DNA of 56,771 bases, filler included, from Platydemus manokwari (Eukaryota), in NCBI GenBank assembly GCA_037951405.1. It is 5 parts of 5 records of this genome, joined end to end, with 100 filler letters (N's around TTAATTAATTAA, not from the genome) between each part and the next. Parts side by side here need not be neighbours in the genome. Positions count along the whole stretch, not along the records: positions 34,474 to 44,490 come from JBBMOY011179212.1; 4 more parts are not named here. One strand, written 5' to 3'. Of this stretch, positions 34,474 to 44,490 are shown piece after piece. The notes below the pieces were generated by a model that ran no database searches, was not told where the DNA came from, and saw only the letters and a program-made list of their open reading frames with translations. The translations under genes and the position numbers were made by a program. Within the stretch, counting starts at the first letter, position 1. Every line of letters begins with the position of its first letter.

Positions 34474-37400
34474 TTATGTCGAACATTTTATTTGATTGTT
34501 TTGAGGTAAATTTGTATAATTGTGATTAATAGATTATTTATAATTGTTTGTCATTTTTTTATATTCAACAATATTCAATCAGTAGTCATTCGCACGATGA
34601 TGTAAATTATTTGTAGATCGCATCAATTTGAGTTTAGAAATTTGATAGGAATATTGGTGTTAACTTGCTTAAGTAATTTCACATACATAATTTCTTCCAT
34701 ACATAAAGTAAATGCGGTTTCATTATTAGTTTAAATACAATAAATTCCAAATAAATGTTATATTCAAGCCACTGTATATTATCTTCTCCGTCTGCTTTGG
34801 AATTCTGGCAATTCAGTGTTGATTTCTCCAATCTCATTATAATTCTTCATAATTTCATAATATATTTGTAAATGTTCCTGAATATTCGAACCTGGTTGAA
34901 AGAAATTACGTACAACATTAGTAAAAACTTGACTTAATGACCGAAACATCTTAAAAAACTATAGAAAAATACACGATCAAAAGAAAGGTAGCAGACTAGG
35001 CTTTGAAACTGTTCTTTTTGTTGTTAGGGTTCTAAGAACTTGGAAAACACAGACCAGCAATATTGTCCTAACTAAATTAGGGATGGATGAGGAAAAAAAT
35101 TAAAAATGGCTATTTCTTGTATAAAGTCGAATATAAATGTGACGTATCTGCAATGGAGTTTCCAAAGGGGAAAGAAAACAGCAACAAAGACATCTTTAAA
35201 AATAGGGGAAAAGGATATCTCAGACAACAGTCACTGGAAGGCAGAAACAGAATTGATTTTACGATTGATTACACGTGATTCATAGAACAATCAAAGAAAA
35301 TAACCATGTTCATCCCATTAAAGTATGGGTACCTCGATAATCAATGTATATGAATAAATATTTGTATAGCTTGTTGTAAATGAACAAACCACATACGTGC
35401 TACGTTCGGGTCTGCTTGGCATTTTATTAATATTTTGTTGAATTAGTTTGGATCTAAGATCACCGTTGCCTTAATTAGTTTCAGTGAGTTTGTTGTTAAG
35501 TCTTCAGGTGCATTTGTAACTTGTAATTGTTAATTTATCACTTCGCGCCTCAATATCATACGAAGACGATAAAAACGGCAACAGTGTTCTATAACTTACT
35601 ATCAGTCTTATTATGAAAACTCAACCTTAATGACTCTTATTACAAAATTGCCTTAAAGTTGTTGACAGTCTCAATTTACCAACACTTGATAAATAAAAAC
35701 GTTTATTCTGAGCAAATTACCAATGCAACACCAATATAAAAAGTTACATATTGATTTTAAAATACAATATACGTTGAATACTATGCCGAGATTCTTATCT
35801 TATTCTTGAAACAAGTGAAAGTAAATAGACCCCACACTCTTGGAGCAAAACCGATTATCTCAGGAATTTGAGAAAATGTCGAAAATACTTGTTAAACCAT
35901 GATTATAGTGTAGATCATTATACATATTATCGCTTACTTAGCATTAAAGACTTATTGGTAAATGGTCGGACAAATTAACGTGAATTATTACAACATAGTT
36001 GATTACGTACACGAACGAAAGTTATGCTAGTGATTTCTTATGAATTAAAGGGCATCGATTACTGATCTCTCCCTGTTTATACAGTTGTTCTTCATTTATC
36101 TCTTCAATTAATTTTGAATTGCGTCGAATTTATCAAAATTCCCTTAATATTTTGCATATTTGTTACATTATTATTCTGTTTAAGACTGTAGGTTGTGAAA
36201 ATAGCAATTCGGTTGGGTTCAGATTAAAAATGTACAATTTTTAAAAATTATTGACTAATACTTGTATCAGAAGGATTTTATAATAATTATCAAAAGAATT
36301 ATAATACTGTTAGTATATAATCTTTAACTTATCTAGACTCTTATACATAAGGTTGTTACTACTTTCTATTGCTCGGTATTATAATAATAGATAATATTTA
36401 AAATAAATATATATAATCAAAATAAATAAGTCGAAAAAATAAAATTTATTCAATTAATAATCAGATGATTTTATATATTCAAGATAATTACAATTACTAT
36501 TGTGATAAATAAAAGAATCCTCAAGCAAAAAGCATAGGGTGTGCCACTTAGGTGGCCCTGGCAAGTCTCTCAAAAAATTCGATGGGGAACCAGAAATGTG
36601 AGCTTGCGTGATTTTATAAGACCGTAAGGCAAAAACTAGCCTTGGGTCGTGATTTAATTAAAGCAACAAAGAATTTACTAACGTTTATAGCTGGAAAAAT
36701 GAAAATAAAAAATAATTTCTTCCTACTGTAGTAAGCCGGGCAATGAAATCAAATATCAATTGGACATAATTCTCCGGATATCGCGATGAAAATAAAACTT
36801 GTGCAGATGTAAAATCGTGTTTGTCAATATTGTATAGTCGAAATTGTGCCGATATGAAATTTGCGAAAAATGATTATTGATGCAAGTTTATATATGGTTT
36901 TAGATATTGGTATGTCATGCACCTTGTCGCTATTTTTAGTAGCACATGTTACTATTTTTAGTTCGAGTGGTTATTTTTAGTAACTTTTGTTGTTCTTTCG
37001 ATTTATCATAAAATGCAACTTCTACTTTTGGAGTTTAATGCGATTTTTTCTAATAACCTTGATGTTGATGATTTCAATGAGATAAAACAAACTTTAAAAT
37101 TTTATGAATATTTTTGTTTTATTTGAAAAAAATTATATTAATATTTATGATTGTTCGATAATTTGGTTGGGTCAAATGTCCCGAATGGTTCCCAACAATT
37201 CCTATAATGAGAATAATCATTTAATATTATCGGCCTAAATGGATATTTCAAATTCGTTACTTTGATTTTATATTTTTTAAAGTACTTTAGTCATAATTAT
37301 TGATTAATAAAATTAAATTTTAACTATTTTTAATTCTCTTGAACAGATAAAAATTATTAATTGTTAAAAATTGTTACAAACATTAGTTCATGAAATCGTT

Positions 37401-38275
37401 GATACAGTAAATGAATACAGTTATATAGCCATAAACAAAAAACATATTGTTACAAAATTTAACGATTAATTCATACGTGTTAAATGAATTATAGCTGCTT
37501 CATACAAAATAATGTTATTGTTCATGGGGATAATGCCAATTTTCTAGAATTCTCAACATATGTGGAACTCAGTAAACGATCACTGATAACAAACCTGAAT
37601 AAGCAATTCCTTTACAATACAACTACTGCATGAAATCAGATCTTTATTGAAAATAGAAGCACAAATTGTAAGTGGAATAAAAATCATCATAATTTAATGT
37701 GCCAGAAATGACGAACAATAATATCGATTAATAAATGCAATAATATACACAATAGAGAATCAGGAACCAATAACTCGATGGTAAATTTAACGAAAATCAG
37801 TTGCATGTTTATCGACTCTGGCAAAGAATATATAAACAAGACAACCAAAAATTTGTGGGAAGCTAGCAGTTTGAGAAATTTTGATTATCGATTTTGCGTT
37901 ATCGTATTCAATGTTTAACGAAATATTATTTCTCTAAATCCATTTGATGTTTTATTCCGAGTATTTGTTTGGAATATCGGTAGAGATGGAATCCGAGGAA
38001 ATCTTTAATAATACTGTGAATTATGTCGCGATTTAAATTAGTGGGTACAAATGTAATTATTGGCATACCTAAGGGACCCGACATTGATTTTAGTAAACTC
38101 GACATAACGGAGACCAGGTTTGCAATTTTAAAAGGTCTTTAAAAATATAAGCAAAATAAAATCAATTAAATTATACCCAGGAATAACCCGATCAAATTTC
38201 ACCACCTCGACCGGGATTACTTTAAACCTATTTAAGACAGAATTCCTCGTATTGAAAGAAAAAATTCCAAATAAT

Positions 38276-39565
38276 CTAATTGTGAAGCTTTATTCGAGAT
38301 TTTTTCGCTTCCGTTTTGTCAAAATTTTTCTTTCGTTTTTGATGCCTTCGGCTCGATAAATGGGTTTCCCATTGTTGTTGGGAGACAAACAATTGATTAT
38401 CACAAATGTCACAAATCTTTTGACATGGTGTATATTTGACGTCACACCTCAATGGTTCCGGTTCGATTTCCAATTGACTCACAAAATCCGAATATCCCAT
38501 TTCCGGTTTCGAATGTCGTATTTGTTCAATGATTGAAATACTTCGTTGAAAGACATTTTCATGCCACATGGGCACATTCGATGAATCCAATTTGAACAAA
38601 GGAATATTTTCCCTTTCACCTGCTTGTCGTAAGAAACGATTCTTGATCCATTTGTTTTGAATTTTAACATATTGTTTGTTGGCTGTTTTTAACTTTTCAA
38701 TGCATTCTTTCAAGGTTTTCTCTTTTCCAATCTCATCACCATCCTCGAGATAATTGAAATAATCGTGAAATTCTTTGAAACCAATCGCTTGGAAGATTCC
38801 TTTTGTATAATCTTTTGATGGGGAAAGTTTTTCGAATAACTTTTGAATGTCGGATAATTCGTTCAACAATCCCAATCTTATCATTTCATCAACACGTTTA
38901 TCCAGACGAGGAAACAGACTGTCTTTTGCACAAGAAATCCACAACAAAACCACTTCATTCAGACCGAATCGTCGAGATTTTTCTTGTTCATTTAGAAAAT
39001 CGGATTGTGTACGTTGAGAATTCAGAGCTATTGATATTGCTCTCCACACTTTTCGACGATTATTAGGATGGAGTAATGCAGCAGAATCACTATCCAAACC
39101 CTGTAGAATTTCATGCAACTCTTCATTTGTCATTGTATTATATTTATCCATTTGACTATCTACTTGAATATCAATCAATCTTGGCCATAATACCGATTCG
39201 ATATAATAATTTGTACCACCAACTAAAATTGGCATTTTATTTCTACTTTTAATTTCTTTAATTTTTTCAAGAGCCAATTTTTGAAAGTCATGAATTGTAA
39301 AATCCAAAGTTTCAATACTTTTAAAACCCAGAAGATGATGAACAATTCCTTGGCATTCTGACTCTGTAGCTTTATTGGTAGCTATGTCCATTCCTTTATA
39401 AATTTGAAGAGCATCGGCATTAATGATTTCTCCATCATAATACTTGGCAATTTCTATTGAAAGTTTTGTTTTTCCTGTACCTGTAGCACCAGAAACAACA
39501 ACAATTGGAATATTTCGATTTGATATGAAAGAGTTTTTTATCAAAGAAATTAATTTTGAAAGAAA
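38276..39565 (-). CDS. TRIT1: tRNA dimethylallyltransferase (isopentenyltransferase, MiaA/Mod5 family); single exon starting at a splice acceptor
   Basis: P-loop GATGTGKT, NADALQIYKGMDIATNK, PILVGGTNYYIESVL, HPNNRRKV, GIFQAIGFKEF, C-terminal C2H2 finger CDIC...WETHLSSRRH and basic KRKK. Confidence 0.95.
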   Translation of the reverse strand, partial: FLSKLISLIKNSFISNRNIPIVVVSGATGTGKTKLSIEIAKYYDGEIINADALQIYKGMDIATNKATESECQGIVHHLLGFKSIETLDFTIHDFQKLALEKIKEIKSRNKMPILVGGTNYYIESVLWPRLIDIQVDSQMDKYNTMTNEELHEILQGLDSDSAALLHPNNRRKVWRAISIALNSQRTQSDFLNEQEKSRRFGLNEVVLLWISCAKDSLFPRLDKRVDEMIRLGLLNELSDIQKLFEKLSPSKDYTKGIFQAIGFKEFHDYFNYLEDGDEIGKEKTLKECIEKLKTANKQYVKIQNKWIKNRFLRQAGERENIPLFKLDSSNVPMWHENVFQRSISIIEQIRHSKPEMGYSDFVSQLEIEPEPLRCDVKYTPCQKICDICDNQLFVSQQQWETHLSSRRHQKRKKNFDKTEAKKSRIKLHN

Positions 39566-41327
39566 CTAAAAATGTAAAATAATAAAAATAATTTTACTTT
39601 TAAATTAGTACAAAGTTAATGTATTATAGAAACAATTAAAATTATATTTTTTATAATACTATGTAATATTATTGGACATTTTCTAAGTAACAACAAAAAA
39701 TAAATTTATTAAATAAAAAATTATTTTTAATATTAATTTTAGCTTTGAAGTTATTCATTAAAACAGTTAAAAATTATTTTGATAAATTTATTGTTATATT
39801 TATACAATTCTATAATATAATCCTTTTAATTTTCGATAAAAGGGAAAGACAATATCTTGACAAAATTTTCTTTTACAGCGGCACTATTTTATCGAATCTG
39901 ATAGTAAATCCAATGGCAAATCACTTAATAATTGCATAAATATTGTTCCATTAAATTCGCGAAAATTGTTAAAATGCATTGGCCATTTTTTTATTTATCA
40001 CATTTTGATTATTTAAAGATTCTCAAAGTTGCATCTAATTTAATTCGAATCACAAAATATTATTTTTATTTACTGCCAAAAATTGATTTACCAAGGACAA
40101 ATGCCTTGAGCTCGTCAGAAATCTCTGAATTATTTTCAAATGTTTTAGATAATTCGATCACAAAATTGTACCTACATAAAATACTTTAATATTGTTAATG
40201 TTATTGTTGGAATTATCATTTCTGCTGCTGTTTGTTTGAAGTTGGAATAGCAAATATAAAATTTACTTCAACGCCTTTATTTGAGATTTGATATACATCA
40301 TAATCGCTAAATTTATGACAAATTAACGAATATCAAACTTGTTTCAACATTCTCAAGCATAATTACAATTTTCGTCAAAAAAGGATCTAAGAAGTTTATT
40401 TATTTCCATCTTTTTTTAATATTGATACTAAAATGTTTCGTAATTGAAAATTTTCATCTTTAAATTTAAAATTTTGTTTAATTATCTTTAAATAAGTTTT
40501 TTCTGTGAGATTTAGTAGAGTAAGCAATAATTTCAGACAAAATAAATTTACAAGTTTTGTATACTGTCAGAATTTTAATTGACTCTGAATGCTGAAAATT
40601 ATAATTTAAATTACAATGAACTACCAACTCAGCTTGACTCCCAACACAATTGAACATCACCATAACCCAACAATAAATAATCATTCAAGATGGGATTAGC
40701 ACCAGAAAGTAGAATATAGATATCACAAAGACTGGATGTCAGAAAAATCACGTAAAGTCATACAGAATGAGAGCTACAGACCAAAAGGACTGGCAGTTGA
40801 TGTCAAAAATGAACTCTTTATGATGTTCCTGCATACATTATTAAATTGATTTATTTAAATAAAGTTTTTAGAATATTCTATTCATTTTTATTTTTTTTAT
40901 TTTATTATGAATGATTTTTTTAGAATTTATTTTATTTTTAAAATTTTATTTTTACGTACTCAATAATATTACTTCTCGCAAAAATAGTCTACCATATTAG
41001 TTTACAAATGAATGGCGTTTAATTTTTCAATTTTATATTTTTGAAATTTAAAATATTTTATGTCTGTGAATAAAGAGATTTTTGTACGAAACTTATTGTT
41101 TTCGGAAGACGAAATGATTATTTGATATATTTAAATTAGAAAACTAATTTCAAATATGATAAATATAATATAGTTTCTCAATTCACGGATATTAAAATAT
41201 GATTGCAAATGATCATTCAGTCACTGATGTTCACTAGATATAATTCTTGTTATGAATTATTAAACATCATTGTCTAAAGTTCAATAAATATATCATTTAA
41301 CATCATCTAATTCGATTTTCACTTATC

Positions 41328-42878
41328 ATGTACGAAAATTATAGATCTGATATCTTTGAAAAACTGCTCCAATTTGTTGGTCTCACCTATTTTGTAATTG
41401 GATTCTTTATGAATTATGCTTGGCTTTGTGCACAATTGGATTATCGATCAAGTAGCAATGATATTCTCGATTTTTGGGAACCGGTTGCAGGTATCACTGG
41501 AACGCTCAACTTGCTGCATGCATTATTAGTCGTCATTTACATTTTTCAAAATAGAAAAACGACATTCAATATCAAAAATTCAGATAGTAATACATTGTTT
41601 TATCTTGTAACTACTCCATTGTTTATAATTTCTATCGTTTATATATGCATCGTGATAGTGCGTGATAGCCTTGTGGTTAATGTATATGGATATTTTACAA
41701 TTGTGTTAAATATTGGAGAGCTGGCTCTGTACTGTGGAACAGCGTATCTGATTATCGCAATTAATTCCAAACAAGTTTTAATCACTACTACAAAACAAAG
41801 GCATGTCTTTCGATTTGTGATGCTAATTTCGATAATTGGAATGGCAACGTATTTCATCCATCATGTTCTTTCACAACAGGTTTTCAGTTTTGTGAGAGTG
41901 GCTTCCAATTATACTGAATATTCCAAATACTATGGGAAATCATTGATTAATAAAATTGGGAATCCATTTTCTTTCAACATTATCAAGCAATTCATGCAAC
42001 CAATAGTCATTTTATTTTGTTGCGTTACCACGATATACTTAATAATACTTAACAATATACAAATCAATAGAAATACTGAATCAAACATTGTCAATAACCA
42101 AGACGAATTAAGTCATTTAATGGAAACTGTAACGACTTGTCAATATCAAACTGAAGTGGAAAATGTATCTTCAAATTTGAATACGTTTCGATCTTTGCGA
42201 TTACCACCTTTTTCACTTATTTTTGGAATTCTACTGATTACAACTTCTATATTGATAATTATTATCACAAACTCTTTTATCAATTCGGAGTTTTTTGATG
42301 TTGCACAATTGTTATCGACAATCTTCTCTGCTATTCTGTATGTATTAGCCATCATCTTATTGTCGTTACAAATCAATGAAATGAAACGATGGCCATTATC
42401 GAAAAAAAATGAAAATTTGATTGACAAGATCCTGCTCTGTATTGGAATGTCAGGTCAGTTGGTTCTATTTTTAGCACAAATCCAATTAAATATTTTTAAA
42501 TTTTCTTCGATATTGTCTGCCAGTGGATTAATACAATTTATTTGTCTCTTTATACAAATTGGAATGCAATATATTGCTGTGACATTAGCATTCGATCGCA
42601 AATGTATCCCACCATCGATTAAAACATGGCAAGAATACATCTGTCCATCGATGGGAATACTGAGTATTAATTTGGGAATGCTCATATACAGTACCTTTGA
42701 TGTTCTTAATCCAAATTCTATTAATAAATTTTCCGATAAAAATAAGGATTGTCTATTTCTGAATTTATTTGGTGTAGGATTTCAATCATTTGGTGAAACG
42801 TTATCAATACTACAACGATTGCATTCGATATTAATTTTTGGAAAAATAATTATCATCACTAATCGAAAAAATGCTTAA
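41328..42878 (+). CDS. Divergent otopetrin-family multi-pass membrane protein (516 aa, intronless)
   Basis: About 12 hydrophobic segments in two halves. C-half motifs IDKILLCIGMSG, FIQIGMQ, ILSINLGMLIYSTFD and QRLHS resemble otopetrin LDxxLL, QxxxQ, NxxxW..TF and FYRFHS. AATAAA at 42962. Confidence 0.7.
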   Translation: MYENYRSDIFEKLLQFVGLTYFVIGFFMNYAWLCAQLDYRSSSNDILDFWEPVAGITGTLNLLHALLVVIYIFQNRKTTFNIKNSDSNTLFYLVTTPLFIISIVYICIVIVRDSLVVNVYGYFTIVLNIGELALYCGTAYLIIAINSKQVLITTTKQRHVFRFVMLISIIGMATYFIHHVLSQQVFSFVRVASNYTEYSKYYGKSLINKIGNPFSFNIIKQFMQPIVILFCCVTTIYLIILNNIQINRNTESNIVNNQDELSHLMETVTTCQYQTEVENVSSNLNTFRSLRLPPFSLIFGILLITTSILIIIITNSFINSEFFDVAQLLSTIFSAILYVLAIILLSLQINEMKRWPLSKKNENLIDKILLCIGMSGQLVLFLAQIQLNIFKFSSILSASGLIQFICLFIQIGMQYIAVTLAFDRKCIPPSIKTWQEYICPSMGILSINLGMLIYSTFDVLNPNSINKFSDKNKDCLFLNLFGVGFQSFGETLSILQRLHSILIFGKIIIITNRKNA

Positions 42879-44490
42879 AAGACAAAATTCCATATTAATT
42901 GATTATTTTAAGAAATGTTATTGAATAATTATTTTATGTTATTGTCTTATTATTTGAAATGAATAAATTTTTAATTTCTGGTTAAATTATGTGAAACAAA
43001 CTTAAATAAAAGGTTAATTAATCGAAATTTATTGACGCATACTGATGAATTTCGCCTTTTAAATAATAATTTCCCACTCCAGCCAGTGATGACAGTTGTA
43101 ACAATCACACAACACACAATTACAAGAGTTCTTCAATCTATTATTATAACTATTGTTACAATATAAATCACTCGATAATAATTTAGTAGATTTTAAGTTA
43201 CCTAATCACAAAAGTATGCGTCTAAAAATCACAGAGAGCCACTCCCAGGATGAAAGACATTCACACCAAGAATTATCGACCTTAAAATACTGGCAATTCT
43301 TTTCTCAAGAGTTGACTTTTTACGTTGTTGATTTTTAAATTTAAATCGCTTTTTCTGGATGTAAACTATTTGAAAATCATAATCAAATCAGAGAGTGGTA
43401 ACTTCATTGGTTATTAGTGCGCATGTCGATTTTGCTCACGCGTCTCAACTTCTTGAAGGTTGTTCCAATCCTTTTAATAAGAATTTCTAGTTCATTTACC
43501 TCAAACCTCACACTAGAATCATCCAAGATGATTCCAAGAGTTCTCAAACACAAGAAAAAATAATTAACTTCCTTATTTAAATTACGATGTGAGGTGTAAC
43601 CACTGGAACCGGTAGTCTTCAGGAGACTCGATCGTATGGTGATAAATCATAAAAAATATATAAATATTGCTTTAATTTGATTTTATGATTAATGTCTTCA
43701 ATAGTCAACACTCTCTTAAGACAGAGAGAGGGTTAATTAACAAAATATTAAATATGAATAAATCAGAATAATTTACGATAAATATACACATAATATTCCA
43801 ACATCAATTATTTCCCACGTATTTTTGGAAGTGAAACCAAAAGCAACAGAAAAAGTTAAAATGGGAGAGGATAAAAATAAATTTATTTTAAATTAAAATC
43901 ATACACAATTAATCATAACTTTAATTAATTGGACGTTTGAGATTAGACTCCTCCAATCTTAGTAAAATTATCAATTTTAAATTAAATTAAATACTTAAAT
44001 CTAAGCAACAAATGTAAATTCAAATTACTAATCAAAACAAAATGAAAAAGTGTAATAACAATGTTTACTAACATTCAGTTAAACTTATACAACAATAAAC
44101 ATGAATATTTATGAAATTAATTATAGCTAGATAGCCTATCTACAACATTTACTACATGAATTCTATAAATGTCAGTCTATAAATATTGTTTGATGTCATA
44201 CAATATTTAAATTCTAGTTTTCTTTAATAAACACATTTCTGATTGTTTAATGCTTTGCTGATTTATCATTGAAGTTTCATTTTATCAAGTATTTGAACAA
44301 TTATTGAGTGTATTTGGTTATTAAATTACTTGTTCATGTCCAATGTTCAATTGATTCAGTTAATATTTTATTATTAGTGATTTATACTTAATTCATTAAA
44401 TATGAATAAAACATATAAAATTGATATTTTAAGGAAATTATTAAATTTTACCATTATGATCTTCTTCGTTATTGGATTTCTCAAGAATTA

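Follow-up and report, generated by a model that had tools for sequence, protein, structure and literature searches.

A gene for a TRIT1/Mod5-type tRNA isopentenyltransferase, situated on the minus strand of the window (the whole stretch of 56,771 nucleotides that was analysed, the gene lying in its 10-kb piece 34474-44490), does not possess an initiator codon of its own. As judged from the sequence, the best explanation is that a working intronless TRIT1 gene receives its AUG from a spliced leader, a reading that we put forward tentatively and at somewhat less than an even chance. That an AUG is spliced onto the acceptor at 39567-39566, be it from a spliced leader or from a cis exon, appears likely on the same basis.

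The minus-strand frame at 38276..39565 is a single exon of 429 codons (39565..38279) followed by the stop codon TAG (38278-38276), and its assignment is based on the translation, the Pfam profiles, the match with structure 3eph and the dN/dS ratio. The frame is matched by IPPT (3e-60), IPT (4e-8) and zf-met (1e-4); positions 1-242 of the 243 of the IPPT profile (PF01715) are covered, indicating a full-length domain, and the structure of yeast Mod5 (3eph) aligns over residues 21-417 with an E value of 4e-58. All the columns that are invariant among nine diverse homologues are retained in the window protein. They include G26, T28, G29, G31 and K32 of the P-loop, whose GxTGxGK[ST] motif with the catalytic Thr is present as GATGTGKT at residues 26-33 (39467..39490, minus strand), and C385, C388, H402 and H408 of the C-terminal C2H2 zinc finger of zf-met type (PF12874, 1e-4; residues 384-408, 38342..38416, minus strand), a finger found in the eukaryotic TRIT1/Mod5 subgroup. 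The DSMQ motif, which provides the general base D and takes part in the recognition of A37 (PMC7200024), occurs in 116 of 121 homologues; in the homologue alignment it is replaced at residues 51-54 (39404..39415, minus strand) by DALQ, with D51 and Q54 kept, a form observed only in the window protein and in two relatives, P0001 and P0002. The same three proteins are also devoid of the Gly-rich loop ahead of the LRF motif (EQEKSR-RFGLNEV).

The Gln codons of the frame are 22 CAA and one CAG and no TAA or TAG is found in frame, in agreement with the standard code, while the G+C content of the whole piece is 28%. P0001, which is encoded by L001 (a metagenome contig of 1.7 kb from ENA), is the closest relative, with 75% identity. 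No other intron is present in the window gene, in the divergent neighbour gene or in the gene of L001. The comparison of the window and L001 copies gave a dN of 0.17 and a dS of about 1.2, and the resulting ratio of about 0.14 is that of two genes under purifying selection. On its sequence, the window TRIT1 is thus an intact, working intronless tRNA isopentenyltransferase gene.

The second relative, P0002, is a UniParc-only entry with 61% identity. Beyond these two, the best matches reach only 34-42% identity and are spread over many phyla. A scan of the JGI metagenomes for closer TRIT1 relatives gave nothing above 34-48% identity, the contig L021, considered as a closer relative, was rejected as a bacterial queA-miaA contig, and the word search returned no protein matching the window's own TRIT1. 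The window protein, P0001 and P0002 form one clade in the TRIT1 tree. Its branch is 2.07 substitutions per site long, and the clade falls within no phylum, standing outside the arthropods and beside the tunicates; the tunicate placement is probably due to long-branch attraction.

The sequence-only reading had proposed that the gene lacks a usable ATG, and the translation bears this out. The first in-frame ATG (39389..39391, minus strand; KGMD) is codon 59, located past the P-loop, and is preceded by none in the TRIT1 frame. Initiation at codon 59 would remove the P-loop, and out-of-frame ATGs near 39446 come before this codon. The same reading had the frame opening at a phase-0 acceptor whose AG forms part of an in-frame stop, and it was right on both points. 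A T-rich, acceptor-like tract (39566..39585, minus strand; TTATTATTTTACATTTTTAG) is closed by the in-frame TAG at 39568-39566, which contains the AG at 39567-39566; the TTT at 39565 serves as codon 1 and the sequence continues downward as TTTCTTTCAAAATTA. Eleven of the 14 bases that precede the AG are pyrimidines; of the 563 AGs counted on both strands of 14.3 kb of non-coding sequence, no more than 25 have 11/14 or above. From the in-frame TAG to the P-loop the sequence contains no other AG, which leaves this one as the only place where an AUG could be joined in frame. The frame being open for 19 codons is not unusual by itself, as this is the case at 24% of the non-coding positions. The arrangement as a whole, in which an acceptor in phase 0 is followed by an open frame with no AUG of its own ahead of an essential domain, is nevertheless beyond what chance would give, judging by the rarity of such a pyrimidine-rich AG and by the same boundary in the relative.

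Indeed, comparison with an orthologue had been suggested as a check, and the acceptor, its phase and a 12-codon peptide (in this frame only) proved to be conserved in L001. In this contig the sequence before TTT also ends in TTTTTTAG, in the same phase and with the TAG in frame; the tract TTATTATTTTTTAG is located at L001:52-69 and the TTT begins at L001:70. The distance from the acceptor to the conserved SNRNIPIVVV is 17 codons in both sequences. When codons 1-12 were compared without gaps, 18 of the 36 bases were identical (10.9 under the null, P 0.01), and the identities were concentrated at codon positions 1 and 2 (15/24, P 0.001) with only 3/12 at position 3 (Fisher P 0.04). The 12-codon peptides following the AG reach a BLOSUM62 score of 24, compared with -10 +/- 8 for a composition-matched null (P about 1e-4), and the two remaining frames of the same codons score -10 and 3. 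As for the flanks of L001, their alignment with the window was no better than that of shuffled sequences, both for the 69 bases preceding the AG and for the 346 bases that follow the stop codon. Since the 12 codons are kept as a peptide in one frame only and no alignment is obtained for the non-coding flanks, the N-terminal extension looks translated in both species, and a translated extension requires that the AUG of both comes from beyond the in-frame TAG.

Upstream of the acceptor, an AT-rich region without any convincing coding exon had been described, and this is supported, no convincing ATG exon being present there. The stretch directly upstream (39566..39840, minus strand; about 12% G+C over about 270 bases), which could be an outron, an intron or a promoter region, shows no alignment with the 69 bases that precede the L001 acceptor. 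Between the acceptor and the divergent neighbour gene, over 1.76 kb, there are 22 candidate phase-0 exons running from an ATG to a GT, and none has a good donor. Both upstream regions also harbour an ATG-started mini-frame (ATG..AATAAT.. and then a stop) at 39659-39679 (minus strand) in the window and at L001:31-54, each in the frame of the main gene; this shared feature may be due to chance (1 in 9) or be an upstream ORF belonging to the outron or leader.

In the spliced-leader reading, the pre-mRNA would be spliced at the conserved acceptor 39567-39566 and an AUG would be joined in phase 0 right before the TTT at 39565, giving the product M-FLSKLISLIKNSFISNRNIP followed by the P-loop. The donor would be a spliced leader with AUG as its last three bases, as in the reported flatworm leaders, and trans-splicing would then be obligatory for the production of an active enzyme. 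We infer both that the organism has an AUG-ending leader and that such a leader, rather than a cis exon, is the source of the AUG. All the reported flatworm leaders end in AUG, and in S. mansoni the leader AUG is in frame in 28% of transcripts that undergo trans-splicing while more than 40 cDNAs need it (PMC12582326, PMC9851317). A search of the 10-kb piece against Rfam gave no match, and no common 5' leader was found on the contigs of the database matches. To our knowledge, AUG-terminated leaders have been reported from flatworms only. A flatworm origin, which we rate at about an even chance, and the lack of any workable short cis intron together set the weight given to this reading.

The AUG could also be provided by an ordinary cis-spliced first exon, made of a 5' UTR and an ATG with or without a few codons, lying further upstream or carrying an atypical donor and spliced in phase 0 to the same acceptor. 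We hold this as a serious possibility but a doubtful one. The evidence for an AUG spliced onto the acceptor AG serves it equally, its mechanism works in any animal lineage, and short first exons that end just after the ATG are common in many genomes, including intron-poor ones. The upstream sequence of L001 is limited to 69 bases, leaving room for such an exon there as well. Two places in the window can be named: an ATG at 40663-40661 followed by GTGATG, within a G+C-richer island (40560-40860), and a 10-codon exon at 41216-41187 with the donor GTGAAT, beside the divergent neighbour gene. Against these stands the fact that the 22 candidates are about the number expected by chance and that none exceeds 3/6 against the usual donor consensus, which may not be that of this organism. 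The 32-base GT...AG segment just upstream (39597-39566) does not supply an in-frame ATG either, and other introns are absent from both genes of the piece and from the gene of the relative.

Initiation without any splicing, at a near-cognate codon within the extension, is considered improbable. The codons available are ATT (codon 6), TTG (codon 8) and ATA (codons 9 and 14), those at positions 6 and 8 being present in both species, and for many organisms starts at codons other than AUG have been documented (PMC9851317). However, the context is poor for all the codons listed (T at -3), the peptide is kept from the first codons after the AG, that is to say upstream of them, and an unspliced leader would include the upstream ATG mini-frame (39679-39659).

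More improbable still is a start codon lost very recently or altered by an assembly error, for instance at the ATA of codon 14, the locus being then a young pseudogene or a misread one. In place of the TTC ATA of the window (codons 13-14, 39524..39529, minus strand), an ATG occurs in L001 and P0002, 6-7 codons ahead of the conserved P of PIVVV, and a single base separates ATA from ATG. Nevertheless, the frame is open over 429 codons in DNA of 28% G+C with every invariant residue retained, and the one sequencing run found to contain the stretch, which is not recorded as RNA, shares 0.99 of the sampled words. The start ATGs of the two relatives are located at differing codons (codon 13 in L001, where the gene caller began P0001, and the position of codon 14 in P0002, which starts with M), and the conservation of the peptide upstream of them points to an earlier start of translation in any case.

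Several other routes to a start codon were rejected. A ciliate-type code, with TAG and TAA read through to the in-frame ATG at 39679, is contradicted by the 23 Gln codons out of 23 that are CAA or CAG, by the lack of in-frame TAA and TAG and by the gene's own TAG stop; in L001 such a readthrough is interrupted by a TGA. If the 32 bases 39597-39566 were a mini-intron, the upstream frame would meet a TAA at 39618 and no ATG, and short introns starting from the upstream ATG mini-frames of the window and L001 are in the wrong phase or too short. A retrocopy of a trans-spliced mRNA was discarded as well, no leader-like ATG being found upstream of TTT and the relative being also intronless.

If, as in the spliced-leader reading, the AUG is donated at the acceptor, the enzyme would begin with the extension encoded by codons 1-19 (FLSKLISLIKNSFISNRNI; 39509..39565, minus strand). 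This segment is outside the catalytic core, which begins at residue 21, corresponding to chain residue 4 of Mod5 in the 3eph alignment. It would form a short basic and acid-free N-terminal peptide, whose place and length resemble those of the M1-M12 segment of yeast Mod5, a segment needed for mitochondrial import (PMC7200024). A likeness to a mitochondrial presequence had been pointed out from the sequence, and it is a weak one. The extension contains no acidic and three basic residues, and its helical hydrophobic moment is at the 87th percentile of non-coding 19-mers (97th for the L001 extension). The make-up itself is common in translations of AT-rich DNA, acid-free 19-mers with at least three basic residues amounting to 12% of the non-coding 19-mers. 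The features of the extension are compatible with a mitochondrial presequence, which it may be, without being strong evidence for it, and its role in mitochondrial targeting is putative.

The further idea that trans-splicing controls targeting could not be maintained for the window species. Mod5 and GRO-1 rely on an N-terminal extension for their mitochondrial targeting and have two starts, whereas human TRIT1 has one start (PMC7200024). The Mod5/GRO-1-type pair of in-frame AUGs flanking a targeting peptide is absent from the window, in which the acceptor is followed by no second AUG ahead of the P-loop. A single functional isoform is hence possible, and splicing would switch the enzyme on rather than select its compartment. 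In L001 a second AUG is present at codon 13, by means of which that species could, as far as its sequence indicates, make two isoforms in the manner of Mod5. It is conceivable, if unlikely in our view, that a leader-donated AUG is wholly required for an essential tRNA-modifying enzyme in a fast-evolving and poorly sampled animal lineage, in which L001 keeps a Mod5-like second ATG and two isoforms, the window species has lost this ATG so that all of its active enzyme bears the leader-initiated presequence, and trans-splicing acts as an on/off switch.

The arrangement can be compared with several known systems. In flatworms, mRNAs have been described whose initiator Met is supplied by the AUG at the 3' end of the spliced leader (Cheng et al. 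2006, J Biol Chem 281:733, as cited in PMC12582326 and PMC9851317). Like them, the window frame opens in phase 0 at a trans-splice-type acceptor with an in-frame stop codon directly upstream, and no AUG of its own precedes the essential domain; unlike them, the case is known from genomic sequence, the leader, the junction and the flatworm origin being postulated. In the tables that supplement the 2025 survey of flatworms, TRIT1 was not found. The mitochondrial and the cytosolic/nuclear isopentenyltransferase of yeast (MOD5) and of C. elegans (gro-1) arise from alternative in-frame starts (PMC7200024). The window gene shares with them the enzyme family and a short extension before the P-loop (19 residues before the core, 11 in Mod5), and the second ATG of L001 is at a position like that of Mod5 M12. 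In contrast to MOD5 (M1/M12) and gro-1, the window gene has no second AUG and its first AUG is not encoded by the exon; it is nearer to human TRIT1, in which one start serves all compartments (PMC7200024). In Trypanosoma brucei, the isoleucyl-tRNA synthetase is dually targeted by means of alternative trans-splice sites (PMC3273800). In both cases trans-splicing would set the N-terminus, and hence the compartment, of a tRNA-related enzyme; the trypanosome gene relies on genomic AUGs and on the choice of the acceptor, whereas the window has a single acceptor and the AUG would be that of the leader.

The mechanism of leader-donated AUG is already known. If it operates here, the gene would be a clean and conserved case in which a housekeeping enzyme obligatorily receives a donated start codon. 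The pair formed by the window and L001, which has a genomic second start, would then offer access to the joint evolution of leader-dependent initiation and dual mitochondrial/cytosolic targeting. If a cis exon is the donor, the finding is an ordinary one. On the practical side, gene-prediction programs that insist on an ATG will cut TRIT1 to codon 59, with loss of the P-loop, or miss the gene, and other genes of the genome are likely to be affected by this error as well.

As regards the surroundings, no long ORF and no Rfam match were found in 34474-38275 and 42879-44490, where the ten longest stop-to-stop frames have no Pfam match, and neither tRNA nor tandem repeat was detected in 34474-40911. 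The piece apparently consists of two intronless genes amid several kb of AT-rich, gene-free DNA. The island at 40560-40860 (30-38% G+C) stands out in an intergenic spacer of 12-28% G+C. It contains an ORF of 68 codons on the minus strand (40684-40481) with no Pfam match, and is a candidate promoter, 5' exon or relic. The second gene, divergent from TRIT1, occupies 41328-42878 on the plus strand and encodes, in a single exon and with its own ATG, a multi-pass membrane protein of 516 residues with a weak match to Otopetrin (PF03189, 4e-9). An exhaustive search among 1.84 billion representatives yielded only two relatives of this otopetrin-like protein, with 38% and 28% identity, and both come from one sequencing run, SRR33002330 (contigs L082 and L083).
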